DNA of 64,000 nucleotides, from assembly GCA_977020255.1 (NCBI GenBank), contig CDROCS010003593.1, positions 62,001 through 126,000 on the forward strand, read 5' to 3'. The translations under genes and the position numbers were made by a program. The notes beneath the pieces were generated by a model that had not been told where the DNA came from, made no database searches, and saw nothing but the letters and a program-made list of their open reading frames with translations. This document shows, piece by piece, positions 6,649-63,078 of this stretch. This DNA comes from Obrimoposthia wandeli. Its lineage: Eukaryota. Each line of letters starts with the position of its first letter. Within the stretch, counting starts at the first letter, position 1.

Positions 6649-7614
6649 TTATTCTTTCAACTCAAAAATTCGAACCATTTTTCTTGATGGATCTAAAACA
6701 ATGATTCTATCATTAGAATCTACTGCTAAATCCAAACCTGCGGTTCCAGCGTCGAATTGATTGGGAGCTGCAACAACCGATTTAAAATCGCCTGATGGTA
6801 AATGAATCTTTATTCTCTCCAAACCTTTCTCACTTGTCACAAATGATCCGTCTGATAACATGGCCACATGACTTGGATTACAACAACCTCCAAAACCATC
6901 GATTTGCATTGATGTTCGTTCCCAGGTCGATATCAAATCACCTTTATCATTATAAGCCTCCAGAGCATGTCGACCAGGATTCACAACCCAAAGCTCACCT
7001 TGACGACCAAACATGAGATCAAAATAGGGGCTCGGGATCACAAAACCTCTAATCCCTTTTTCAAGATTCTTAGCTCCAATATTATTAATCTTCTTTCCAT
7101 CTATTGTATACTGATAAACGATTTTCTGTCCCGCATCTGCTATATAAACAACACCATCCTTTTCAGCGATACTGCTGATATAGGCTTTTGTTCCTTTGAT
7201 TTGAAAACTATTATTTAATCCACCGTTTGGCTTACGAACATCGACCCTATTTCCAACACCCAAGAGGATATTGCCTGATTCAGAGATACTAACAGAATGA
7301 GCATCGCCTCTTACTTTCATACTCGATTGAACTTGCCCTTGCATATCAAAAATCCAAAGCTTATCGGTTCCACTCACATAGATTCTATCTTCCGCATCTA
7401 ATGCAAGTCCGAATACAGATTCTGAATTAATTTTAAAAGATGATACTTCCTTATAAGCAATCAATGATGAATCGACTTTCCTCAATTCCTTAAGATCGTA
7501 TTCATAAATATTCTGTTGAGGTTTTGGTTTCTCAAAAAACAAGTCACCCGCTATTAAGCCCACCAAAAGCAGAAGGAGTACAATCGAAAATATTAATGTC
7601 AGCTTGTTCTTCAT
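6649..7614 (-). CDS. NHL-repeat-like beta-propeller protein with N-terminal membrane anchor
   Basis: N-terminal TM; repeats like GLALDAEDRIYVS, VYIADAGQKIV, LAVDSNDRIIVLD; GFGGCCNPSHV motif. Confidence 0.75.
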   Translation of the reverse strand: MKNKLTLIFSIVLLLLLVGLIAGDLFFEKPKPQQNIYEYDLKELRKVDSSLIAYKEVSSFKINSESVFGLALDAEDRIYVSGTDKLWIFDMQGQVQSSMKVRGDAHSVSISESGNILLGVGNRVDVRKPNGGLNNSFQIKGTKAYISSIAEKDGVVYIADAGQKIVYQYTIDGKKINNIGAKNLEKGIRGFVIPSPYFDLMFGRQGELWVVNPGRHALEAYNDKGDLISTWERTSMQIDGFGGCCNPSHVAMLSDGSFVTSEKGLERIKIHLPSGDFKSVVAAPNQFDAGTAGLDLAVDSNDRIIVLDPSRKMVRIFELKE

Positions 7615-7639
7615 AATCTCTTATTTTCAAAGTCCAATC

Positions 7640-9067
7640 TTAATTTGCACGCAAATCGATACAAAGCATGTGTTTTGAATCTCGCATCAACAATCGGCCA
7701 TCCGTTATCACCATCGGCCCCCAAGCATCATGACCATCTATAAGCTTCACTTTATCGAGCAATTCGAATTTCTCAGTCGAGGCTCGGGCTATGGTCAATT
7801 CACCATTATCTTTAAGGATAAAGAATTTACCATCAGCCACTAGATAAGGACCTAAACCGAAACGATCAGTCTTACCACTTGTCCACAAAATTTTAGTACA
7901 ATCGTTAGGATCGCAACAGACAAATTGGTTACGCATTGCTCCTGCATCCTTTGGAAGAATAGTAAACATGCGTCCTTTATATAAAAGTGGCGTTTGTTGT
8001 TCTGATGCCATCCCGTCTTTGGGCTTGTATTTCTGTAAGGTTTCAACTTGATATATTCCACCCACTTTCTTCACTTGAAAAAGAGCGCCACCGGCACCAT
8101 ATCCTGCAGTCATATATACTTTACCATCACCATAAATCAACGGAGATGGAGCAACTACTGAAGGAGAAAAATCTTTTGTCTTCCATAGAATTTGCCCAAG
8201 ATCGTCGCCTTCGGCTGATACACCACAAATTCCACCTACTGCAGCATAAACCCACATTTTCTTTCCATCAAGAACCATTGGCATTATAGAAGAGTGCGAC
8301 ATTTTCCATCCATCAGGATTAGGTGTTTCCCACAAAACCTTACCTGTAGCACAATCAACGCCAATAAGCAGAGCTTTACCTCCAGGTGCAATTATGGCAA
8401 CATTGTTATCGATAATTGGACATTGCCCGGTATACCAAAAAGGAATTTCGGATTGATATTCTTTGACCAAATCCAATCCCCACAAGAAATCTCCTGATTC
8501 AGGATTCACACACATCACATGGCAACGTGGCCCCATACTCACAATATATTTATCATTTATTGCAGGAATGGTTCTCGACATACCGTGATTTCTCTTCACA
8601 TGAACCTTATAAGATCGTTTCCAAATCTCTTCGCCAGTCTCCAAAGAAAAGCATCGAAGAGCATCTGCCTTTTTCACCTCATCATAGTCAAGCAAATAAA
8701 CCTTACCATTATAAACGACAGGAGCAGCATGTCCTTCACCTAAATCTTGTTTCCACAAAATCTTTGGCTCAGGTCCAATCTTATCTACAAGCTTTATTTT
8801 TTCTTTCGAAACATTATCAAAATCTGCACCTCTAAACTGAGTCCATTTACCTGTTAAACTTGAAGTGTGCTCAGTATAGGATATAAATTTCTCACCAATA
8901 TTTACCACATCGACAGCTTCGGTTCCAGCTTTAGGACGATTATCCAAGCCCGGCACACTTGCTGAGAAATCTTGAACTGGATCGTATCTCAACCAAGAAA
9001 CAAATATTGAAATGGCTATAACAACAGCCAAAGTCAGGAAAAGAATATTTAAGAATTTTTTATTCAT
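7640..9067 (-). CDS. PQQ-like beta-propeller protein, N-terminally anchored
   Basis: N-terminal TM; WTQFRG; CFSLETGEEIW, CVNPESGDFLW, VDCATGKVLW docking repeats. Confidence 0.85.
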   Translation of the reverse strand: MNKKFLNILFLTLAVVIAISIFVSWLRYDPVQDFSASVPGLDNRPKAGTEAVDVVNIGEKFISYTEHTSSLTGKWTQFRGADFDNVSKEKIKLVDKIGPEPKILWKQDLGEGHAAPVVYNGKVYLLDYDEVKKADALRCFSLETGEEIWKRSYKVHVKRNHGMSRTIPAINDKYIVSMGPRCHVMCVNPESGDFLWGLDLVKEYQSEIPFWYTGQCPIIDNNVAIIAPGGKALLIGVDCATGKVLWETPNPDGWKMSHSSIMPMVLDGKKMWVYAAVGGICGVSAEGDDLGQILWKTKDFSPSVVAPSPLIYGDGKVYMTAGYGAGGALFQVKKVGGIYQVETLQKYKPKDGMASEQQTPLLYKGRMFTILPKDAGAMRNQFVCCDPNDCTKILWTSGKTDRFGLGPYLVADGKFFILKDNGELTIARASTEKFELLDKVKLIDGHDAWGPMVITDGRLLMRDSKHMLCIDLRAN

Positions 9068-21480: not shown

Positions 21481-22653
21481 ATGGGACGATTTGTCAACAA
21501 TTTTAAATTACAAGGCGATAAGGTGATATGGATCATTATTTTTCTACTTTCCATCATTTCCCTTTTAGTAGTCTACAGTTCTACTGGAACCTTAGCATAT
21601 AAGGTTAAAGGAGGAAATACGTCCTATTTTTTCATCAAGCAATTGGTTCTTCTACTCGCTTGTTATGTTATAATTTATATTACTCACAAAATACCATACA
21701 AGCATTATTCTAGCTGGGCTAATATGGGCTTACTCGTTGCTATTGGCATGTTGTTATTGGCAAAAATTGTTGGGGTAAATCTTAACCAAGCATCAAGATG
21801 GATTACAATTCCCGGAATTGGTTTTAACTTTCAACCATCTGAATTAGCTAAACTAGCTTTAATTTTATTTGTCTCTCGGATACTCTCAAAATTCCAAACC
21901 GATAGAGAATGTCAAAAAGAAGCATTCTGGAAAATAATTGCAGCAGTTGCTGTGGTGTGTGGCATCATTTTTCTGGATGACTTTTCTACTTCAGCAATAT
22001 TAGGAGCCATCTGCTTAATGCTAATGTTTATAGGTAGAATAGGCGCCAAGTATCTCCTTGGAACCATGGGTTCTGGCTTAGGCCTTATCATCATCTTACT
22101 CATAATAGCCCCATTCTTACCTGATAGTTTTGGACGTATTCATACCGTCAGAAATCGAATTTTGAACTTCGCTGGCATGGGTGAGAAAAAAACTGACAAC
22201 GACCGTAACTATCAAGTCGATCAGGCTAAAATAGCCGTTGTTTCTGGTGGCATAACGGGTAAAGGCCCTGGCAACAGTGATCAACGAAATTTTTTACCTC
22301 ATCCCTACTCTGATTTTATTTATGCGATTATACTAGAAGAACTAGGATGGGTTGGCGGATTTGGAATTCTAGCCCTTTACCTATTCCTAATTTATAGAGC
22401 AGGCTCCATTGTCCGGAAATGTGACCGGACCTTTCCAGCTTTCCTCGTCATTGGACTCAGTCTAAGTATCGTTGCACAAGCATTAACCAATATGGCTGTT
22501 TCTGTTAATTTAATTCCAGTAACAGGTCAACCGCTGCCTCTGGTCAGCATGGGAGGAACCTCACTATTTTTTACAAGTGCAGCCTTGGGGATGATTTTAA
22601 GTGTGAGCCGAGAAGTTAAAGAACAAGAAGATTTAAACCATGAAGAAGATTAA
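21481..22653 (+). CDS. ftsW: SEDS protein FtsW
   Basis: Multi-TM; FQPSELAK, YSDFIYAII, GQPLPLVSMGGTS. Confidence 0.95.
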   Translation: MGRFVNNFKLQGDKVIWIIIFLLSIISLLVVYSSTGTLAYKVKGGNTSYFFIKQLVLLLACYVIIYITHKIPYKHYSSWANMGLLVAIGMLLLAKIVGVNLNQASRWITIPGIGFNFQPSELAKLALILFVSRILSKFQTDRECQKEAFWKIIAAVAVVCGIIFLDDFSTSAILGAICLMLMFIGRIGAKYLLGTMGSGLGLIIILLIIAPFLPDSFGRIHTVRNRILNFAGMGEKKTDNDRNYQVDQAKIAVVSGGITGKGPGNSDQRNFLPHPYSDFIYAIILEELGWVGGFGILALYLFLIYRAGSIVRKCDRTFPAFLVIGLSLSIVAQALTNMAVSVNLIPVTGQPLPLVSMGGTSLFFTSAALGMILSVSREVKEQEDLNHEED

Positions 22654-23743
22654 AATAATAGTTAGCGGAGGTGGAACTGGAGGGCATATCTTTCCAGCGA
22701 TTTCGATTGCCAATGCCTTAAAAGCTAAACATAGCGATATAGAAATTTTATTTGTGGGTGCCGATGGTAAAATGGAAATGGAAAAAGTACCAGCTGCTGG
22801 TTACAAAATCATTGGACTTCCCATTAGAGGCTTACAAAGAAATTTCAGCAAAGAGAATCTTAAATTTTTCTCTCGACTATTCAAAAGTCTTCGCAAGGCT
22901 AAAAAGATTATAAAAGAATTTAAACCTGATGCTGTAGTTGGAGTGGGTGGTTATGCCAGTGGCCCTTTATTGCATGTGGCAAACAAAATGGGCATTCCAT
23001 CATTGATTCAAGAACAGAATTCATATGCAGGAATCACTAATAAACTGTTAGCGAAGAAGGCAAATAAAATTTGTGTGGCTTATCAAGGTATGGAGCGTTT
23101 TTTTCCTGCTGCTAAAATCTTGATGACTGGAAATCCTGTCAGGAAAGATCTAACACAATTAGAGGATCTAAGATTAGAAGCTCAGCGTTTTTTCAATCTC
23201 GATCCAAACAAAAAGACATTACTGGTTATTGGAGGAAGTTTAGGAGCAAGAACCATTAATCACAGTATTATAGAAAACATTGAAGCGTTTAAAGATAAGG
23301 CTATTCAAGTGATATGGCAATGTGGTAAATTTTACCATACAGAGATGAAGGAGAAGCTTTCTCAAGCCAATATTGACAACGTACAAGTTTCAGATTTTTT
23401 AGCTCGAATGGATTTGGCTTACGCTGCATCCGATCTTGTTATTTCAAGAGCTGGAGCAGGAACTATTTCTGAACTGTGTTTGGTGGAGAAAGCATGTATT
23501 CTAGTTCCTTCACCTAATGTTTCAGAAGATCATCAAACTAAGAATGCTATGGCTCTAGTTGATCAAAACGCAGCCATCATGATTTCAGATATCGAATCGA
23601 GAGAAAGATTGGTTAAAGAAGCCCTATTGTTATTAGATAAGGATGCTGAGCTAGAAAACCTAAGAAAGAAAATTGCCTTACTAGCAAAACCAAATGCTGC
23701 AGACGAAATTGCAGATGAAATATTAAAAATGATTAAGCAATAA
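22640..23743 (+). CDS. murG: MurG glycosyltransferase
   Basis: GGGTGGHIFP, GGYASGP, EQNS, GGSLGA, RAGAGT, HQTKNA. Confidence 0.97.
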   Translation: MKKIKIIVSGGGTGGHIFPAISIANALKAKHSDIEILFVGADGKMEMEKVPAAGYKIIGLPIRGLQRNFSKENLKFFSRLFKSLRKAKKIIKEFKPDAVVGVGGYASGPLLHVANKMGIPSLIQEQNSYAGITNKLLAKKANKICVAYQGMERFFPAAKILMTGNPVRKDLTQLEDLRLEAQRFFNLDPNKKTLLVIGGSLGARTINHSIIENIEAFKDKAIQVIWQCGKFYHTEMKEKLSQANIDNVQVSDFLARMDLAYAASDLVISRAGAGTISELCLVEKACILVPSPNVSEDHQTKNAMALVDQNAAIMISDIESRERLVKEALLLLDKDAELENLRKKIALLAKPNAADEIADEILKMIKQ

Positions 23744-23788: not shown

Positions 23789-25168
23789 ATGATGAATATA
23801 GAGGATTATAAAAACATCTATTTTGTAGGAGTTGGAGGTATTGGGATGAGTGCTATTGCACGATATTTCAAAGCTATTGGGAAAAATGTGTCTGGTTACG
23901 ACAAGACACAAACTTTGCTTACTGGGGAATTAGAAAAAGAAGGTATTGATATTATTTTCAGCGATGGTGTTGATATAATTCCAGAGATTTATCTCAATAA
24001 AAGTGAAACTCTAGTGGTTTATACACCTGCTATTCCTTCAATTCATGAGCAATTATCTTTTTTCAAAAACGAGAATTTCCTTTTGATGAAAAGAGCCCAA
24101 GTTTTGGGGTTCTTATCTGATCCATTAAATGGAATTGGTATTGCCGGCACACATGGAAAAACAACTGTATCGAGTCTAACAGCTCATATATTCAAAACTT
24201 CAGCTCTAGATTGCAATGCCTTTTTAGGTGGTATTGCAAGAAATTACAACACCAATCTACTCCTGTCAAAAACGAGTCCATGGGTGGTTTTAGAAGCTGA
24301 TGAGTTTGACAGATCATTTCTTCAACTTCACCCACAGGTCGCTGTAGTAACATCAATGGATGCGGATCATTTGGACATATATGGTAAAAAAGAAGAACTG
24401 GAAAAAACATTTCAAGACTATGTCAGACAAATCAAAAAAGATGGTCACCTAATTTATAAGAAAGGTTTACCATTAAACCCAGCAGGTATCAATCTTTATT
24501 CATATTCCTTAGAAGATGAAGAAGCTGATTTCTATGCAAAAAACCTTAAGCTAGTTCAAGGTTTATATCAATTTGATTTGGTATACCCAGAGGGTTGCAT
24601 TGAAGGCTTAAATCTTTCATATCCGGGTCGAATAAATGTTGAGAATGCAATTGCTGCTAGTGCTGTCGCATTAATTTGTGGCATTAGCGAAGATGAACTT
24701 CGATCAGCATTAAATAGTTTCTTGGGGGTTAGACGAAGATTTGATTATAGGATTAAGAGCGATAACTTAGTTTTTATTGATGATTATGCACATCACCCTA
24801 AAGAACTATGGGAAAGCATCTCATCGGTTAAAGCTATCTATCCAAATAAAAAAATAACGGGAATTTTTCAACCTCATCTTTATACAAGAACACGCGATTT
24901 TGCAGATGGTTTCGCAGAAAGTTTAGATCTATTAGACGAACTAATCTTACTCGACATTTACCCTGCCAGAGAACTTCCGATAGAAGGTGTTGACTCGAAC
25001 CTTATTCTTAGCAAAATGAAAAAGAAAGGTAGAATTTGCACAAAGGAAGAATTAATTAAAGAAATTGAACAGAGCGAAATAGAAGTATTATTAACTTTGG
25101 GGGCAGGTGATATCGACAAGCTAGTTAAACCCATAGAACAGGTTTTGAATCAAAGAATAAAATGCTAA
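23789..25168 (+). CDS. murC: UDP-MurNAc:L-Ala ligase MurC
   Basis: GVGGIGMS, GTHGKTT, EADEFD, DDYAHHP, FQPH. Confidence 0.97.
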   Translation: MMNIEDYKNIYFVGVGGIGMSAIARYFKAIGKNVSGYDKTQTLLTGELEKEGIDIIFSDGVDIIPEIYLNKSETLVVYTPAIPSIHEQLSFFKNENFLLMKRAQVLGFLSDPLNGIGIAGTHGKTTVSSLTAHIFKTSALDCNAFLGGIARNYNTNLLLSKTSPWVVLEADEFDRSFLQLHPQVAVVTSMDADHLDIYGKKEELEKTFQDYVRQIKKDGHLIYKKGLPLNPAGINLYSYSLEDEEADFYAKNLKLVQGLYQFDLVYPEGCIEGLNLSYPGRINVENAIAASAVALICGISEDELRSALNSFLGVRRRFDYRIKSDNLVFIDDYAHHPKELWESISSVKAIYPNKKITGIFQPHLYTRTRDFADGFAESLDLLDELILLDIYPARELPIEGVDSNLILSKMKKKGRICTKEELIKEIEQSEIEVLLTLGAGDIDKLVKPIEQVLNQRIKC

Positions 25169-25890
25169 AAAAAATCAAGCCCATATTAATCACTCTGGCA
25201 TTATTTGCCTACATCATTTTCACTTTCGCTTTTGTGAATACGAAAAGTGATGCCATACTGGTTACAGGTATTGATATCAATATTACTGATAGCTTAAATA
25301 CGCATTTCATTTCCGATTCTGAGATCAAAAATCTCATATTAAAGAATCATCCAGGCATAATTGGTAAGCAAGCCACAAAAATAAATAAAGAGCAACTAGA
25401 ACGTGTGATAAACAAAATTCCATCTGTAAAAAACACAGAGGTTTTCACCTCACTAAAAGGCTGCTTACATCTCGAAATTGAACAACGAAAACCAGTTGTT
25501 CGATTACTAAAAGGGAAAGGGTTTTATATTGATGAAGAAGGTAGACGAATGCCGCTATCTTCTAACTATACCTCAAGAGTTTTGGTTGTGTCTGGGCACA
25601 TAAAAGACAAGACGATTGAAAGCGAACTAATGCCACTGGTGAATTTTATTACAAAAGATGAATTTTGGTCTTCGCAAATCAATCAAATCTATGTAGATTC
25701 GAATAATGAATACATTTTAATACCTAGAGTAGGCGGACAGAAAATTGAGATGGGGGAAATTGATAATTTCGAAAGGAAATTTGACAAGCTCTATGCATTA
25801 TACAAAGATGGGTTCTCAACAGTGGGTTGGAACAAATACAAAAAGATAAATTTGAAATACGAGAATCAGATCGTATGTACAAAAAGATAA
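25162..25890 (+). CDS. ftsQ: Cell division protein FtsQ
   Basis: Between murC and ftsA; N-terminal TM, POTRA-like region, INLKYENQIVC end. Confidence 0.88.
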   Translation: MLKKIKPILITLALFAYIIFTFAFVNTKSDAILVTGIDINITDSLNTHFISDSEIKNLILKNHPGIIGKQATKINKEQLERVINKIPSVKNTEVFTSLKGCLHLEIEQRKPVVRLLKGKGFYIDEEGRRMPLSSNYTSRVLVVSGHIKDKTIESELMPLVNFITKDEFWSSQINQIYVDSNNEYILIPRVGGQKIEMGEIDNFERKFDKLYALYKDGFSTVGWNKYKKINLKYENQIVCTKR

Positions 25891-25894
25891 TAGG

Positions 25895-27145
25895 ATGATC
25901 AACACTAACGAAATTATAGCGGCTATAGATATTGGTACAACTAAAATTGTTGCCATAGCGGGGAAAGTTACATCCAACGGAGAACTTCAAATACTTGGAC
26001 TACAAAAAACAAAATCGACAGGTGTAGTTAAAGGCGTTATCCAAAACATTAACCTCACAATTGAAGCCATTCGTGAGGTAATAGAAAAATTACAAGAAAA
26101 TACAAATATTAAAATAGATAAGGCATACGTTGGTATTGCCGGACAACATATTAGAAGCTTAAAAAACCGTCAGTTTAAATATATACAAAACGATTCAGAA
26201 ATTATTACTCAAGAAGATATTGATACGATTATAAAAGAAAATTTCAGAATTCCAATTCAAGTTGGCGAACAAATTCTTCACGTTATCCCACAAGATTATG
26301 TAGTTGATAAAGATAAAGGAATTACTGACCCTCTTGGAATGGCTGGACGCAGACTTGATGGTAACTTTAATATCATTATTGGAAGAACAGCATCAGCTAG
26401 AAATATTGAAAACTGTGTTAAAGCTGTTGATATTGATATTGAAGAACTTGTTTTAGAACCTCTAGCCTCATCTCTAGCAGTTTTAACTCCTGAAGAGAAA
26501 GAAGCTGGCGTTGTACTTGTTGATATAGGTGGTGGAACCACAGATATAACACTCTATTTCGATGGTGTTCTTCGTCACACAGCTGTTATTCCTTTTGGAG
26601 GCGATGTGGTAACCAAAGATATTAAAGAAGGATGTCATCTTTTATTAAAACAAGCAGAAGCATTAAAAGTACAGTTTGGTGAATCTGTTGAACAATTAGC
26701 AGATAACGATAAAGTGGTCAATATTCCACGAACAGGAGGATGGGATCCCAAAGAGATCGCATTTAAAACCCTTGCACAGATTATTCAGTGCCGTATGGAA
26801 GAAATCTTAGATCGTGTGAAATATCAAATTGACATGACGCCTTATGGTGACAAACTAGGTGCTGGAGTTGTACTGACTGGTGGTGGAGCCATGCTTAAAA
26901 ATCTAGATATATTAACGAGGGAAAAACTAGGCGTAGATGTTAGAATTGGTTATCCCAATGCATCAGGTCTAATCAAGGTTGATGAAGCAATTAATATTCC
27001 AATGTATGCAACAAGTATTGGTCTACTATTGAATGGCTTGAATAAGTTACAGCACAGACCAAGTGACGCTATTACGAACCAAGCAAATACTAAAACTAGG
27101 AAAAAGGGAATAAAACGTTTCTTTGAAACACTCTTCGATAACTAG
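25895..27145 (+). CDS. ftsA: Cell division protein FtsA
   Basis: IDIGTTK, VDIGGGTTD, VLTGGGA; amphipathic C-tail KKGIKRFFETLFDN. Confidence 0.96.
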   Translation: MINTNEIIAAIDIGTTKIVAIAGKVTSNGELQILGLQKTKSTGVVKGVIQNINLTIEAIREVIEKLQENTNIKIDKAYVGIAGQHIRSLKNRQFKYIQNDSEIITQEDIDTIIKENFRIPIQVGEQILHVIPQDYVVDKDKGITDPLGMAGRRLDGNFNIIIGRTASARNIENCVKAVDIDIEELVLEPLASSLAVLTPEEKEAGVVLVDIGGGTTDITLYFDGVLRHTAVIPFGGDVVTKDIKEGCHLLLKQAEALKVQFGESVEQLADNDKVVNIPRTGGWDPKEIAFKTLAQIIQCRMEEILDRVKYQIDMTPYGDKLGAGVVLTGGGAMLKNLDILTREKLGVDVRIGYPNASGLIKVDEAINIPMYATSIGLLLNGLNKLQHRPSDAITNQANTKTRKKGIKRFFETLFDN

Positions 27146-27253: not shown

Positions 27254-28567
27254 ATGATTGACGATATACTACCTGTTGATTTCGAAACAAAAGAAGAATC
27301 AATAATTAAAGTTATTGGTGTTGGAGGCGGTGGAAGTAACGCTGTCAATCACATGTTTAAAGAAGGTATTAAAGATGTTGGCTTTGTGATATGCAATACC
27401 GACTCGCAAGCTTTAGTGGATAGCCCGATTCCTTTAAAAATACAATTGGGTAAAAGTCTAACGGAAGGACGAGGAGCAGGCAACAAACCTGAAAAAGGTA
27501 GACAATCAGCCATAGAAAGTATAGATGATGTCAATAAACTTCTTGGAGAAAAAACCAAAATGATTTTCATTACTGCCGGCATGGGTGGAGGAACTGGTAC
27601 AGGTGCAGCTCCAGTAATTGCCGAGCTTGCTAAAGAGAGAGGTATACTTACCGTTGGAATTGTAACCATTCCTTTCCTATTTGAAGGGCAACGTAGAGTT
27701 CAACAAGCATTAGAAGGCATAGAGAATTTAGAGAAACATGTAGATGCCTTATTGATCATCAACAATGAAAAATTAAGAAGCATGTTTGGCGACTTAAAAC
27801 TTTCAGAAGCTTTTGCTCAAGCCGATAGTGTTTTATCAATTGCTGCCAAATCTATCGCCGAAATCATTACAGTTCATGGCTATGTAAATGTCGACTTTGC
27901 TGATGTAGAAACAGTAATGCGTAACTCTGGAGTTGCCATTATGGGATCAGCTAGCTTATCTGGTGAAGACAGAGCAATTAAGGCAATTAAGCAAGCTCTT
28001 AATTCACCATTATTAAACAGCAATAATATCTATGGTGCACGTAATATTCTACTAAATATCATATCAGGTACCGAAGAAGCAACCATGATGGAGGTTACTG
28101 AAATTACAGAATATGTTCAGGCAGTTGTAGGAAACGATGTTAGTATTATATGGGGGAATGGTTATAGCGAATCATGCAATGATGAGTTGAGCGTAACTAT
28201 TATAGCAACAGGTTTTACTGATAATCCAATTCCAGAGCTAAATATCCAGCCTCGCCAACATGAACAAAATAAGGAACCTCAGCTTGAATTAATAATTGAA
28301 AATCCAGAAATGCTAGAGACCGAAGCTAACAATTCAAAAAGGAAGGTTTCGTCTACAAAAATGAACAACACAAACCAGACAGAAATGTTTGAGGAATCAT
28401 TTGAAGAGGAAAATGTAACTAAGAGCAATGAGGATACAACACCTGATAACAGGTCGAATGATTCTTATACTGCTCCTAAGAAAAAAGAGGTAGTAAAGGA
28501 AAAGAAATCAGGTTGGTTCAAAGACACTCTAGGTTCATTATTCGATACCGAAGATACATCTATGTAA
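27254..28567 (+). CDS. ftsZ: FtsZ paralogue 1 (no recognisable core C-terminal peptide; FtsA-like tail)
   Basis: GVGGGGSN, GRGAG, AGMGGGTGTG, T7 loop NVDFADV; ends SGWFKDTLGSLFDTEDTSM. Confidence 0.95.
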   Translation: MIDDILPVDFETKEESIIKVIGVGGGGSNAVNHMFKEGIKDVGFVICNTDSQALVDSPIPLKIQLGKSLTEGRGAGNKPEKGRQSAIESIDDVNKLLGEKTKMIFITAGMGGGTGTGAAPVIAELAKERGILTVGIVTIPFLFEGQRRVQQALEGIENLEKHVDALLIINNEKLRSMFGDLKLSEAFAQADSVLSIAAKSIAEIITVHGYVNVDFADVETVMRNSGVAIMGSASLSGEDRAIKAIKQALNSPLLNSNNIYGARNILLNIISGTEEATMMEVTEITEYVQAVVGNDVSIIWGNGYSESCNDELSVTIIATGFTDNPIPELNIQPRQHEQNKEPQLELIIENPEMLETEANNSKRKVSSTKMNNTNQTEMFEESFEEENVTKSNEDTTPDNRSNDSYTAPKKKEVVKEKKSGWFKDTLGSLFDTEDTSM

Positions 28568-28573
28568 ATTAAT

Positions 28574-28664
28574 AGCTTGGAAATACACACTATCTCCAAG
28601 CTTAAAGTTTCATTTAGAAAATCTTAATTAAAATAAGGTCGTAATTAATTAAGCATTACATTTG
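28574..28664 (+). promoter_or_regulatory. Hairpin after ftsZ1 plus TAnnTTTG promoter for ftsZ2
   Basis: agcttgga/tccaagct inverted repeat at 28574-28602; TACATTTG at 28657-28664. Confidence 0.6.
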
Positions 28665-28736
28665 CATCGCAAAAAGGTTAAATACGATAGAATACAATCA
28701 CACACATCCAACAAGAGGATAAATACAATAGAATTA

Positions 28737-30011
28737 ATGAGCGAGGAATTAATGGATTTTGGCTTGATAGAAGACGAACCTTCAATTATTAAAGTAATTG
28801 GAGTTGGTGGTGGTGGAGGCAATGCTGTTAACTACATGTATCAGCAAGGCATCAAAGATGTTGATTTTGTCATCTGTAATACGGATGCACAAGCATTAGC
28901 AAAAAGCAGTGTGCCAAAGAAAATTCAACTTGGAGAATCTTTAACAGAAGGACGTGGAGCTGGTAATAAGCCTGAAAAAGGTGAACAATCAGCTATAGAA
29001 AACTTAGATGATGTTATTGAAGTATTAGCAGATAATACCAAAATGGTATTTATTACAGCTGGTATGGGTGGAGGTACCGGAACTGGTGCTGCTCCAATCA
29101 TTGCTAAGGCTGCAAAAGACATGAATATTCTTACTGTTGGTATTGTAACTATCCCTTTCCGTTTCGAGGGTAGGCAACGTATCAATCAGGCAGTAGAAGG
29201 TATAAGAAAACTTAAAGAAAATGTCGATTCACTTCTTGTAATCGATAATGGAAAACTTTCTGAAATATATGGCGATCTTAAACTATCAACAGCATTCTCG
29301 AAAGCTGATGACGTTTTAGCCACAGCAGCAAAAGGGATTGCTGAAATTATAACACTACATGGTTACATCAATGTTGACTTCGAAGATGTTAAAACCGTGA
29401 TGACAAATAGTGGTGTTGCTGTTATGGGATCAGCAAGTGCAGAAGGTGAAGGAAGAGCAGTAACTGCTATTCGAGAGGCATTAACCTCTCCTCTACTTGA
29501 CAATAACGATGTTCGTGGAGCAAAATCTATTCTTCTGAATATCACATCTGGAACCGAAGAAGTGACAATGGATGAAGTCGGTGAAATCACCGATTATGTC
29601 TATGAAGCAGTAGGTGATAGTGGAAATATTATTTGGGGTACTGGGCAGGATGAAGCTTTAGGTGATAATATTTCTGTAACTATTATTGCTACTGGTTTTG
29701 AACATGACGAATCAGAAAATTACGATACAAGACCTCAACAAGCTGTTATAAACAAACCGAGTGCTTTTAAAGGAGGTAAAGGTCCAGCTAAAACAACCGA
29801 AACTCAAAATTTACAATTGGAGTTAGATCCTGTATCTGAACCAGAAGCTAAGCGAAATGTAAAACTAGATGCTAGTAACATGAACGATGCGGAGATTCAG
29901 GAAAATGAAGAAATTCCAGCATATAAGCGTAAACAAATCAATTTACAGAGAACCGAACCTCCAAAAACATCCAATGTGGTTCATTTCGATTTAGATGATT
30001 TTGATAATTAA
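28737..30011 (+). CDS. ftsZ: FtsZ paralogue 2 (canonical, with core C-terminal peptide)
   Basis: Likely start is ATG 28737 (MSEELMDF); the ORF-track TTG lies inside the -7 box. GVGGGGGN, AGMGGGTGTG, NVDFEDV; EEIPAYKRK. Confidence 0.95.
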   Translation: MSEELMDFGLIEDEPSIIKVIGVGGGGGNAVNYMYQQGIKDVDFVICNTDAQALAKSSVPKKIQLGESLTEGRGAGNKPEKGEQSAIENLDDVIEVLADNTKMVFITAGMGGGTGTGAAPIIAKAAKDMNILTVGIVTIPFRFEGRQRINQAVEGIRKLKENVDSLLVIDNGKLSEIYGDLKLSTAFSKADDVLATAAKGIAEIITLHGYINVDFEDVKTVMTNSGVAVMGSASAEGEGRAVTAIREALTSPLLDNNDVRGAKSILLNITSGTEEVTMDEVGEITDYVYEAVGDSGNIIWGTGQDEALGDNISVTIIATGFEHDESENYDTRPQQAVINKPSAFKGGKGPAKTTETQNLQLELDPVSEPEAKRNVKLDASNMNDAEIQENEEIPAYKRKQINLQRTEPPKTSNVVHFDLDDFDN

Positions 30012-30068: not shown

Positions 30069-30515
30069 ATGACTTTATTAGAACAAATAAACAGTGACAT
30101 GAAGGCTGCAATGAAAGCCAAAGATAAAGAGAGATTGCAAGCTATTAGAGCAGTAAAAACAGCTTTCACTCTTGAAATGACAAAAACAGGTAGTACTGAG
30201 ATTGCCGACGCTGATGCTTTAAAAATTGTACAGAAACTTGCTAAGCAGAGAAAAGATTCTGCCGATACATTTATTGCAGCTGACCGTCAAGAGTTGGCTG
30301 ATGTTGAACTACATGAGATGTCAGTTATTGAAGCTTATCTTCCAGCACAGATTGGTGATGAAGAACTAACTGAAATTATCAAAGGTTTGGTTGCGAAAAC
30401 TGGAGCTAGCTCTATTAAAGATATGGGTAAAGTTGTTGGTATGGCATCTAAGGAATTAGCTGGTCGTGCTGATGGGAAAACCATTGCAGATAAAGTGAAA
30501 GCTTTACTAGCTTAA
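30069..30515 (+). CDS. GatB/YqeY domain protein
   Basis: DMKAAMKAKD, KQRKDS, YLPAQ, KDMGKV, GRADGK. Confidence 0.93.
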   Translation: MTLLEQINSDMKAAMKAKDKERLQAIRAVKTAFTLEMTKTGSTEIADADALKIVQKLAKQRKDSADTFIAADRQELADVELHEMSVIEAYLPAQIGDEELTEIIKGLVAKTGASSIKDMGKVVGMASKELAGRADGKTIADKVKALLA

Positions 30516-33236: not shown

Positions 33237-34205
33237 ATGAAAGATATTATCCCACCAGTAGATAAAGAGCTCCTTGAGAAAGAACTAACCGAGGATCGAT
33301 TTGTAAGAAAGACCAATAAGGGATCGAACGAAATTTATTGTTTTACTCACCATAACTCGCCAAACTTAATGCGCGAGGTAGGACGTTTACGTGAAATTAC
33401 ATTTAGAAAAGCTGGTGGTGGAACTGGTAAAGAAACAGATATTGATCATTACGATTTAGATGAAAGACCTTATCATCAACTAATTGTTTGGGACCCTAGT
33501 GCAAAGGAAATATTAGGAGGATATCGCTATATTATCTGTAAGGATGCTCACACAGATGAACAAGGTAATTCAATTCTTGCAACTTCAAGATTATTTGATT
33601 TTTCAGATGAATTCAAATCAAAATATATCCCAAAAATGATTGAACTTGGTCGTTCATTTGTTCAGCCAGAATACCAATCAATATTAAAAGGAAGAAAGAG
33701 TCTTTATGCGCTAGACAACTTATGGGATGGACTAGGAGCTTTAATAGTTGAATATCCTGAGATCAAGTACTTCTTTGGAAAAGTGACAATGTATCCTCAC
33801 TTCAACACCGATGCACGTAATCACATTCTTTATTTTATGAATAGAATGTTTAATGACGTAGATAACCTTGCTTGGCCATTAAATCCTCTTAAAACAAATG
33901 CCGATACAGCTGCAATGGATGCAACCTACAATGGTGTTGATTTTAAAGAAAACTATAAGATTCTATCTAGAATCGTACGCGAAAATGGAGCGAATATCCC
34001 TCCACTTATTAATGCATACATGGGTCTATCTCCATCTATGAGAAGTTTTGGGACAGCCGTGAATACTCATTTTGGGGACGTTGAAGAAACGAGTATCATG
34101 ATTACAATCGAAGATGTATACGAGAATAAAGTAGAACGTCACATCTCTTCTTACTTGAATTTTTTAAAAATTCGTTTACCAAGAACAAACTTTCATTTGT
34201 TCAAG

Positions 34206-34257
<52 letters not shown>

Positions 34258-34277
34258 CATTAGTCAATTCAAATTGA
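33237..34277 (+). CDS. GNAT-family amino-acid N-acyltransferase (GlsB/OlsB-like, often annotated as hemolysin)
   Basis: EVGRLREITFR, DIDHYD, ILGGYR, IELGRSFV, IPPLINAY; C-tail length affected by the A run. Confidence 0.85.
34206..34255 (+). repeat. 50-nt poly(A) homopolymer inside the 3' end of the GNAT gene
   Basis: Directly visible; translates in frame as poly-Lys. Confidence 0.95.
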
Positions 34278-34286
34278 CCACAAACG

Positions 34287-34318
34287 AAAAAAGTCATCCA
34301 TTAGGATGACTTTTTTTT
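34287..34318. terminator. Bidirectional terminator between the GNAT gene and purF
   Basis: aaaaaagtcatcc / ggatgactttttt. Confidence 0.85.
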
Positions 34319-34337
34319 ATTTATTTAAACTCAAAGA

Positions 34338-60309: not shown

Positions 60310-63078
60310 TTAGACTACTATATTTACGATTTTCTTAGGGACAATGATCACCTTTTTAGGGGTTTTACCATCAATCCATTTCTGGGCCTGTTCACAAGTC
60401 ATCACGGCCTGTTCTATTTCATCTTTACTCAGACTTAACGAAAGCTCAAGTATGAATCTCATTTTCCCATTAAATGACACAGGATATGAGTAGACATCTT
60501 CAACTAAATACGATTCATTAAAGACAGGGAAAGTCGCATCGGTAATACTATTGGTATTTCCACACAGCTTCCAAAGTTCTTCAGTAACATGAGGTGCAAA
60601 AGATGCTAACAGAGTAAGTAGTTCTTCTAAAATTGCTTTCTTATTACACTTCGCACTATTCAGCTCATTTACACAAATCATAAATGCCGAGACTGACGTA
60701 TTGAATGAGAAACGTTCAATATCATCTTGAATCTTCTTAATGGTTTTATGTAGTATTTTATATTCAGCCTTAGTTGGTTCATCTGTTGAAATCACGAATT
60801 CATTCTGATCGTTATGGAATAAACGCCACAACTTCTTCAAGAATTTATGAACACCATCAATTCCATTAGTATCCCAAGGTTTTGATGCCTCTAATGGTCC
60901 TAAGAACATCTCATACAAACGAAGTGTATCTGCACCATATTCATCAACAATCACATCAGGATTAACCACGTTAAACATCGATTTCGACATTTTCTCTACA
61001 GCCCAACCACAAATGTATTTACCATCTTCCAATACAAATTCTGCATCAGTATACTCAGGCATCCAATTTTTGAAAGCTTCAGTATCTAAAACATCGTTTT
61101 TAACGATATTTACATCAACATGAATTTGAGTCGTATCGTGATCTTTTCTCAAACCATATGACACATATTTGTTGGTATTCTTAATACGATAAACAAAGTT
61201 TGAACGACCTTGAATCATACCTTGATTAATCAATTTCTTGAAAGGCTCATTCTTACACACTTTACCTATATCGAAAAGGAATTTATTCCAAAAACGTGAA
61301 TAGATCAAGTGACCAGTTGCGTGCTCAGTACCTCCAATATACAAGTCTACATCTTGCCAATATTCATTTACCTCCTCAGATACCAACGCGTCATTATTAC
61401 GAGGATCCATATAACGTAAATAATAAGCTGATGAACCTGCAAAGCCAGGCATGGTATTCAACTCAATAGGATAACCATCTTCAGTCGTCCAATTTGTTGC
61501 ACGTCCCAATGGTGGCTCACCTGTTTCGGTTGGTAAATATTTATCAACCTCAGGTAACTCAAGAGGCAATTTATCTGCATCCATCATTTGTGGCATACCA
61601 TCCTTAAAATAAACCGGGAATGGTTCACCCCAATAACGCTGACGAGAGAAAATAGCATCACGCAATCGGAAATTGATTTTACGCTTACCTAATCCTCTTT
61701 CTTCAATTTCAACATTTGCTTTTACAATAGCATCTTTAACATCCAGGCCATTCATAAAATCTGAATTGATCATCTCACCAGATTTTGCATCGTAAGATTC
61801 TTCGCTAATATCACCTCCTGATACAACAGGTACAATTGGCAAATCGAATTTCTTTGCAAAAGCGTAGTCACGACTATCATGAGCAGGAACGGCCATGATA
61901 GCACCTGTTCCATATCCAGCCAAAACGTAATCACTTATCCATACAGGAATTGCTTCTCCTGAAAATGGATGTATAGCATACGAGCCTGTAAATTCACCAC
62001 TAACCGTCTTAACATCGGCCATACGTTCTCTTTCAGTACGCTTTTTAGTAGCTGCAATATAAGCTGCAATTTTTTCTTTATATTCTGGAGTTGTTAATTG
62101 ATCTACTAACTCACTTTCTGGAGCCAAAACCATAAAACTAACTCCGAAAATCGTATCAGGTCTGGTTGTAAAAACCGTCATACGTACATCAGAATCCTTC
62201 ACCATGAAGTCCATCTCTGCACCTTCTGAACGACCAATCCAGTTACGCTGAATTTCTTTTAACGAATCAGTCCACTCAAGACTCTCCATATCTTCAAGTA
62301 AACGCTTTGCATAAGCAGATACTCTTAGAGACCATTGACGCATTTTTTTCTGCTCAACAGGATAACCTCCACGAACAGATAAACCATCTTTAATTTCATC
62401 ATTAGCAAGCACAGTACCCAACTGAGGACACCAGTTCACTAAAGTATTCGCCAAATAAGCTAAACGGTAATTTAATAGAATAGTATCTTGCTCTTTTTCA
62501 TTTAGAACATTCCACTCCTCAGCCGTAAAAATATCTTCTTGAGAAGTAGCAGCATTAACACCTGCATTTCCCTTAGTTTCAAATTCAATTACCAAATCAG
62601 AAATAGCTTCAGCTTTTTGAGTTTTACTATTGAAATAATGTTTAAACATTTCAATAAAAGCCCACTGAGTCCATTTGTAATATTCAGGATCAGAAGTACG
62701 AACCTCTCTATCCCAATCGTAAGAAAATCCAATTTTATCTAACTGCTGACGATATCTTTTGATATTTACTTCAGTCGTTATAGCAGGATGTTGTCCCGTT
62801 TGAATCGCATATTGCTCAGCAGGTAAACCATAGGCATCGTAGCCCATTGGGTGCAATACATTAAAACCTTTTAAACGCTTATAGCGAGAGTATATATCAG
62901 AAGCAATATAGCCAAGTGGATGACCAACATGTAATCCAGCACCCGATGGGTAAGGGAACATATCGAGAACATAAAATTTTGGTTTACTTGTATCAACATC
63001 AACTTTATAAGTCTTGTTATCAACCCAAAACTTCTGCCACTTTTTTTCTATTTCTTTAAAATTGTATTCCATGTTCAA
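60310..63078 (-). CDS. leuS: Leucyl-tRNA synthetase
   Basis: [43 protein letters not shown]. Confidence 0.98.

Follow-up and report, generated by a model that had tools for sequence, protein, structure and literature searches.

A tandem ftsZ pair in Marinifilaceae and Prolixibacteraceae: a complete FtsZ paralogue without the core peptide and with a C-terminal tail resembling that of FtsA

The 64,000-nucleotide window analyzed here (positions 62,001 to 126,000 of contig CDROCS010003593.1, from the Obrimoposthia wandeli assembly GCA_977020255.1) carries on its plus strand, at 21.5-30.5 kb, the end of a division and cell wall (dcw) gene cluster with the order ...ftsA-ftsZ1-ftsZ2-yqeY, which is characterized by two adjacent genes for FtsZ. 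The genomes closest to the window are those of Ancylomarina species, at 87-90% identity; hence, judged by sequence, the source of this DNA is an Ancylomarina-like member of the Marinifilaceae. The genes and protein elements of the cluster are as follows (AF2: AlphaFold2; pLDDT: predicted local distance difference test, its confidence score):

21481-22653, plus strand: ftsW
22640-23743, plus strand: murG
23789-25168, plus strand: murC
25162-25890, plus strand: ftsQ
25895-27145, plus strand: ftsA, 416 amino acids (TIGR01174, 356 bits; Pfam FtsA and SHS2_FTSA)
27089-27142, plus strand: C-terminal tail of FtsA, TKTRKKGIKRFFETLFDN, a basic patch and then an amphipathic helix (from the translation)
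27254-28567, plus strand: ftsZ1, 437 amino acids, with a complete core and without the core peptide (TIGR00065, 359 bits)
28229-28510, plus strand: FtsZ1 linker, residues 326-419, variable and predicted to be disordered (pLDDT 30-56)
28475-28507, plus strand: basic patch PKKKEVVKEKK, specific to Ancylomarina, the last part of the FtsZ1 linker
28511-28546, plus strand: predicted amphipathic helix of FtsZ1, GWFKDTLGSLFD, residues 420-431 (from conservation, hydrophobic moment and an AF2 model of the tail fragment)
28547-28567, plus strand: acidic end of FtsZ1, TEDTSM, and the stop codon
28737-30011, plus strand: ftsZ2, 424 amino acids from an ATG (TIGR00065, 370 bits); the frame can also be read from a TTG at 28662
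29907-29933, plus strand: core peptide of FtsZ2, EEIPAYKRK (from the translation)
29934-30008, plus strand: 25-residue extension of FtsZ2 past the core peptide, ending ...NVVHFDLDDFDN (from the translation)
30069-30515, plus strand: yqeY-like gene

Both FtsZs score above the cut-off of the NCBIfam equivalog TIGR00065 (295 bits), and both contain the Pfam domains Tubulin (PF00091) and FtsZ_C (PF12327). Their cores align without gaps over 312 residues at 65% identity, and the likeness ends where the globular part ends. Across 92 FtsZ1-type sequences the GGGTGTG signature (G109-G117) and the T7-loop residues N212, D214 and D217 are invariant, and AF2 models the FtsZ1 core confidently. By these sequence features FtsZ1 is complete and keeps the GTPase and polymerization motifs of an FtsZ intact; this conservation, together with the intact motifs, rules out a pseudogene or a decaying copy. 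The two proteins part at their C-termini. The first-pass annotation of this DNA, made from the letters alone, had assigned the FtsA/ZipA-binding core peptide to FtsZ2 and none to FtsZ1, and both the translation and a motif search bear this out: FtsZ2 has the canonical D/E-I/V-P-x-F/Y-L/K-R/K peptide, as does every downstream FtsZ of the tandem loci, whereas a search for P-[AVTS]-[FYW]-x-[RK] past the core found none in FtsZ1, nor in any of its 194 closest FtsZ1-type relatives. Thus, each genome has two FtsZ paralogues, with the adaptor-binding peptide in one of them, as in other dual-FtsZ systems.

Orthodox FtsZs of the Bacteroidota end in ...NSYLHDNVD. These proteins have a second conserved element about 45 residues past the core peptide, at the end ...(S/R)YLH(D/E)NVD, of which the Marinifilaceae FtsZ2s bear a diverged form (...NVVHFDLDDFDN in the window, ...GNVIKFTLDDE in others). 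We know of no function assigned to this element.

The order of ftsA, the tail-bearing ftsZ, the core-peptide ftsZ and yqeY is fixed in all the tandem loci examined, including two divergent lineages, and the relatives among the Marinilabiliales with a single FtsZ have the order ftsA-ftsZ-yqeY. According to a survey of how FtsZ evolved, few bacteria have two ftsZ copies, and in those the extra one lies outside the dcw cluster (PMC9871819). The ftsZ1/ftsZ2 pair departs from this statement: both copies lie inside the cluster.

What FtsZ1 has in place of the core peptide is the end PKKKEVVKEKKSGWFKDTLGSLFDTEDTSM (28475-28564, from the translation). The stretch singled out by the first-pass annotation, 28440-28567, spans the end of the linker, this tail and the stop codon, and it was said there to space W, F and L along one face of a helix. 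We computed hydrophobic moments (muH) on the Fauchere-Pliska scale, with 16,241 11-mers from the long open reading frames (ORFs) of the window as background. The 11-mer WFKDTLGSLFD is the amphipathicity peak of the whole C-terminal region of FtsZ1, with a muH of 0.59 and a mean hydrophobicity <H> of 0.63, a pair of values attained by just 0.3% of the background. For comparison, the best 11-mer of the FtsZ2 C-terminus has a muH of 0.38, and that of the FtsA tail 0.77 with a net charge of +2. Across the FtsZ1 family the median muH of the tails is 0.64 at 100 degrees, the periodicity of a helix, versus 0.16 at 160 degrees, that of a beta-strand. The latter value rules out an amphiphilic strand of the kind described for the Arabidopsis motif Z1C, and the helical face described earlier is recovered in the family as a whole. 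When the last 60 residues are modelled by AF2 with an alignment, the sole helix falls at residues 420-431, with a moderate pLDDT of about 60-70. FtsZ1 thus has, as FtsA does, a predicted amphipathic helix at its extreme C-terminus after a flexible linker.

Conservation of the tail in orthologues had been named beforehand as a check of the earlier claim, and we followed it within the Marinifilaceae and the Prolixibacteraceae. The 74 best FtsZ1-type matches, which come from Ancylomarina, Marinifilum, Paralabilibaculum and other Marinifilaceae, all lack the core peptide and end in W-[FL]-K-x-x-[FL]-x-x-[LI]-F-D-x-x-D-T-x-M. A genome scan found the tandem pair also in Prolixibacteraceae (loci L017, L018 and L035), and the L017 FtsZ1 as a query brought up 120 further clusters, from Sunxiuqinia, Mangrovibacterium, Gaoshiqia and others, which all lack the core peptide and typically end in D-x-W-F-x-R-Q-F-x-[RK]-[FL]-F-[DE]-D-x-D. 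The tail is present in all 194 of the closest FtsZ1-type clusters of the two families, and the motif [WL]-h-x3-h-x2-h-F-[DE], where h is hydrophobic, in 189 of 195 family members. Averaged by region over these 195 sequences, the frequency of the commonest residue amounts to 0.79 for the core, 0.33 for the linker (residues 326-417) and 0.65 for the tail. Within the latter, conservation concentrates at W421 (98%), F422 (91%), 426 (F/L), 429 (F/L/I), F430 (100%), 431 (D/E) and D434 (98%), the residues between them vary, and the spacing i, i+1, i+5, i+8, i+9 places the hydrophobic ones on one face of an alpha-helix. In sequence, the conservation is limited to the hydrophobic face of the tail, and the preceding linker of about 90 residues is unconstrained; conservation of that face is what the check found, across both families.

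Past the helix, the FtsZ1 tails and the FtsA tails of the Marinilabiliales (L007-L017, L064-L069) share a further feature: a conserved acidic stretch that runs to a methionine, the last or nearly the last residue (D-T-x-M, D-V-D-M, G-A-S-M). The FtsZ1 ending ...FD..D..M recurs in these FtsA tails. Membrane insertion alone is no sufficient explanation for this conserved acidic ending.

The first-pass annotation had seen in the FtsZ1 tail the LFD of this genome's FtsA tail. The two resemble each other beyond these three residues and into the acidic ending, as is apparent from pairs of ends: ...FLGSLFDTHDVDM in FtsA of Marinifilum and ...TLGSLFDTEDTSM in FtsZ1 of Ancylomarina; ...TLFFDEEQDTEMY in FtsA and ...NRFFEDQDTEMNA in FtsZ1 of locus L017; ...RFLGALFDNEDAEM in FtsA and ...RFSKIFDNEDTDM in FtsZ1 of locus L067. 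Three comparisons bear the likeness out. A hidden Markov model (HMM) of the FtsZ1 tail, run against the 2,973 ORFs of the window and the loci, found FtsA tails as 18 of its first 19 non-self matches. Comparison of the FtsZ1-tail and FtsA-tail profiles with hhalign gave a probability of 91% (P 9e-7), with a reversed control at 8.8. Finally, the FtsA tails of two single-FtsZ Marinilabiliales, fetched for another purpose and without part in forming the idea, were compared with all ORF C-termini: the Marinifilum FtsZ1 tails score 36-40, where the background lies at 13.5 +/- 3.2 and nowhere exceeds 33, and FtsZ1 tails are the best matches of these queries outside FtsA itself. A word search with FtsZ1 residues 396-437 alone returned Ancylomarina FtsZ1s and nothing else. 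By these measures the FtsZ1 tail is related to FtsA tails, a relation which at so short a length is a likeness and not a proof of homology.

Such a likeness could be convergent, the tail having arisen de novo or out of the former end of FtsZ, since amphipathic helices that are short, C-terminal and trailed by acidic residues would all look alike. In keeping with this, the comparison covers about 20 residues, the real hhalign score is reached by three of 200 column shuffles, and the HMM E-values for FtsA tails are marginal, at 0.004 to 3. Further, a DNA-level comparison, in six genomes, of the ftsA 3' end and its spacer with the ftsZ1 3' end and its spacer found no similarity except in the sequence coding for the FtsZ N-terminus (z about 1-3) and no trace of a duplication junction, a result that says little at such divergence; an origin from ftsA therefore stands on those 20-odd residues. 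Against convergence, the likeness runs past the amphipathic pattern into a ...IF-[DE]-x-K/D-x-x-x-M ending and is strongest with the FtsA tails of related single-FtsZ lineages; moreover, the tail does not resemble the end of orthodox Bacteroidota FtsZs (hhalign 6.5, the level of shuffles, which rules out that end as its source), and the presumed source gene lies directly upstream. We consider convergence distinctly unlikely, and the FtsZ1 tail is probably derived from FtsA.

The simplest form such a derivation could take is one in-frame tandem duplication, which would have joined the 3' end of ftsA to the linker of ftsZ. A single event of this kind would leave precisely ftsA, an ftsZ1 with an FtsA tail and an ftsZ2 with the original end. 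In the phylogenetic tree, the FtsZ2s of both families branch with the orthodox FtsZs of other Marinilabiliales, and the FtsZ1s form one well-supported, long-stemmed clade per family. The approximately unbiased (AU) test does not reject a single FtsZ1 clade, with a p-AU of 0.82 in the quick set, for which the constrained tree scored 14.8 log-likelihood units better, and of 0.35 in the careful set; for family-specific duplications the result is borderline (p 0.041 and 0.067), with long branches in play. As the shared motif and the gene order add to these tree results, one old event behind the FtsZ1s of both families is tentatively favoured.

Other FtsZs in the loci are also of note. The single FtsZ of the Bacteroidales (L022-L058) has a degenerate core peptide (SPTYxR, TPVFKR), and that of the Dysgonomonadaceae ends in ...SLFD. 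The Bacteroidales FtsZ groups with the Marinifilaceae FtsZ1s (support 90/91) on a very long branch of 0.94, a grouping which could reflect either long-branch attraction or a true relationship. In L062 and L063 an orthodox FtsZ, P0076 (4001-5467; VPAYKR, ...NSYLHDNVD), lies outside the dcw cluster, between the genes for 3-dehydroquinate synthase and pantoate ligase, and is the sister of the Marinifilaceae FtsZ2s in the tree. In L047, a contig of Candidatus Azobacteroides, a second and very divergent FtsZ ORF of 395 amino acids without the core peptide (6821-8008) sits a few hundred bases downstream of a normal ftsZ.

We propose that FtsZ1 is a GTPase-competent FtsZ paralogue in which a copy of the FtsA tail, which would attach the protein directly to the membrane, has taken the place of the core peptide and the Bacteroidota end; we would give this reading of the sequences a probability of roughly 55%. 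The aromatic face formed by W421, F422, L426, L429 and F430 would insert in the cytoplasmic membrane and thereby attach FtsZ1 filaments to it. With a tail that is acidic or weakly cationic, each monomer would probably bind weakly, and the avidity of the polymer would make the binding effective. FtsZ2 would stay on the canonical route via FtsA. The 65% core identity is compatible with co-assembly of the two proteins, and if the cores do co-assemble, the ring would have two kinds of tether. The fuller history, namely that an in-frame tandem duplication in the ancestor of the Marinifilaceae and Prolixibacteraceae grafted the FtsA tail, and that a self-anchoring FtsZ1 co-assembles with an FtsA-dependent FtsZ2 into a two-tether Z ring, we offer as a tentative scenario, possible but with the odds somewhat against it.

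Several observations weigh against direct attachment. One is the charge of the tail: with a HeliQuest-type discriminant D (FtsZ1 values for 18-mers containing the motif), the FtsZ1 tails have a median of 0.38, and 25% of them reach 0.68, versus a median of 1.98 for FtsA tails. The best motif-containing 18-mer of the window FtsZ1 has a D of 0.66. The FtsZ1 tails thus lack the positive charge and the lipid-binding discriminant typical of membrane-targeting helices. The basic patch that the first-pass annotation placed before the helix is there in the window and in Ancylomarina; it does not extend to the family at large, in which the median net charge of the 12 residues upstream of the helix is -3. 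In the full-length AF2 model the tail has a pLDDT of 30-42 and forms no helix. The role of FtsA tails as membrane anchors comes from E. coli and B. subtilis and is assumed for the Bacteroidota. Lastly, the near-invariance of W421, F430 and D434 is stricter than is usual for membrane-targeting helices, and would also fit a protein-binding groove.

This last point leads to the main rival of direct attachment: the FtsZ1 tail would be a docking peptide, whose aromatic face fits a groove in a divisome partner, with indirect tethering or regulation as the outcome. The partner could be FtsA outside its core-peptide pocket, FtsZ2, or another protein that recognizes FtsA tails. The strict spacing of the three near-invariant residues in two families and the net acidic local charge with its low lipid-binding discriminant agree with docking, as does the established fact that FtsZ core peptides bind their partners as short amphipathic helices, in complexes with FtsA and ZipA. 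It is at odds with the nearest sequence relatives of the tail, namely FtsA tails, whose established role is membrane insertion, with the variable tail positions being exactly those of the polar face, and with the want of a candidate partner gene linked to the pair in any locus. We regard docking as unlikely, and direct membrane attachment continues to be the reading we prefer.

It is also conceivable that FtsZ1 is membrane-bound via its tail, as we propose, and works outside the FtsZ2 ring, in separate structures that serve, for example, the control of cell shape or length. The long branches of the FtsZ1 clades relative to FtsZ2 would suit a separate role, as would alterations in the Prolixibacteraceae FtsZ1 cores, such as TIPSxxEG for the usual PFxFEG, and the description of the genera, in part through their names, as filamentous or curved rods. 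Such a role is nevertheless hard to square with the place that ftsZ1 has kept at every locus, inside the dcw cluster and flanked by ftsA and ftsZ2, and with cores that are 65% identical and keep all polymerization and GTPase motifs, and we deem it very unlikely.

An FtsZ that anchors itself is not new as an idea, being preceded by M. genitalium, plant FtsZ1 and OdinFtsZ1, and several known systems invite comparison. In M. genitalium FtsZ, the C-terminal helix attaches to liposomes and E. coli membranes, and earlier proposals of amphipathic helices for archaeal and Atribacteria FtsZs are cited in the same study (Dutta et al., bioRxiv 10.1101/2023.08.29.555414). The FtsZs of M. genitalium and M. 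pneumoniae are like FtsZ1 in being natural bacterial FtsZs with no canonical core peptide and with a terminal amphipathic helix. They differ in that M. genitalium is wall-less, with a minimal genome and a single FtsZ, and its helix is unrelated and carries a cholesterol-recognition motif, whereas FtsZ1, with its FtsA-like helix, would be hosted by a walled Gram-negative bacterium that also has FtsA and another, orthodox FtsZ. In plants, FtsZ1 binds the membrane and FtsZ2 binds ARC6, the binding by Arabidopsis Z1C being weak (An et al., 2024, PMC11285052). Like the window pair, the plastid pair comprises one paralogue that keeps the adaptor core peptide and another that has lost it and has a replacement C-terminal motif with weak direct membrane binding, the labour being divided in one ring. 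The weak binding per monomer that we suggest for FtsZ1, made good by avidity, parallels that reported for Z1C (PMC11285052). In contrast, Z1C is an amphiphilic beta-strand of the RR/KLFF type, and the adaptor is ARC6 rather than FtsA; as the tree puts both paralogues of the window inside the Bacteroidia, their duplication would be independent of the plastid one.

In Odinarchaeota, OdinFtsZ1 binds the membrane with an N-terminal amphipathic helix and OdinFtsZ2 uses SepF (PMC12583498). This dual system is comparable to the window pair, in that one FtsZ bears a helix and the other is recruited by an adaptor via its C-terminal tail, and differs in the N-terminal position of the helix, in SepF as the adaptor and in the ancient archaeal origin of the paralogues. 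The engineered FtsZ chimeras with a membrane-targeting sequence (FtsZ-mts) have the same layout as FtsZ1: a core followed by a flexible linker, with an amphipathic helix at the terminus where the adaptor peptide would be (10.1101/2023.08.29.555414). These are man-made and bear the cationic MinD helix, whereas FtsZ1 is natural, conserved in two families and much less cationic. The closest counterpart of the tail is the FtsA C-terminal helix itself: it is the best sequence match, likewise follows a flexible linker at the very end of its protein and has the acidic ...hF-D/E ending, while it belongs to an actin-fold protein, is strongly cationic and is less conserved in sequence.

Our literature search found no paper that treats ftsZ together with these Marinifilaceae and Prolixibacteraceae genera. 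What is new here is the walled Gram-negative setting with FtsA and an orthodox FtsZ, the tandem position of the genes and the apparent source of the tail. Tethering of the Z ring, and the role of FtsA beyond tethering, are long-standing questions that have so far been approached mostly with artificial FtsZ-mts chimeras. In a large and culturable walled Gram-negative group that includes Marinifilum, Ancylomarina, Sunxiuqinia and Mangrovibacterium, FtsA, an FtsA-dependent FtsZ and an apparently FtsA-tailed FtsZ are found together. If the tail binds the membrane, direct and adaptor-mediated tethering could be compared naturally within one cell, and the pair would be a bacterial parallel to plastid FtsZ1/FtsZ2. 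If the two-tether reading is true, these bacteria would offer a natural system for studying what FtsA does beyond anchoring, and the proposed origin, if true, would be a clean case of a new protein function arising when a duplication joins one gene's end to the gene beside it.

The spacer between ftsZ1 and ftsZ2 (28568-28736), aligned over eight Ancylomarina loci, has two parts, a hairpin and then a strongly conserved block, with the following features:

28574-28602, no strand assigned: 12-bp hairpin directly after the ftsZ1 stop codon, variable in sequence among the Ancylomarina loci
28657-28664, plus strand: TAcATTTG in the conserved block, candidate -7 promoter element for ftsZ2

The latter we take to be a match to the Bacteroidetes -7 consensus TAnnTTTG. 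From this, ftsZ2 may have its own promoter, in which case a start at the TTG at 28662 would be unlikely and differing expression levels of FtsZ1 and FtsZ2 would be possible. Metatranscriptome contigs from relatives about 90-95% identical to the window cover parts of ftsA, of ftsZ1 including its tail, and of ftsZ2, which is weak evidence of transcription; one of them bridges the spacer (28397-29391). In one relative's contig, at window positions 28414-28421 in the FtsZ1 linker, a 1-base deletion is followed 7 bases on by a 1-base insertion. This compensated change of frame fits a linker constrained in length and free in sequence.

Further along the window, an unbroken run of about 50 A (34205-34255) lies at the 3' end of the ORF at 33237-34277, giving its product a poly-lysine C-terminus, and is followed by a terminator made of a hairpin and a T-run at about 34292-34320. 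Bacterial chromosomes do not usually contain such runs; this one could be a slippage-prone tract or stem from an artefact of assembly.

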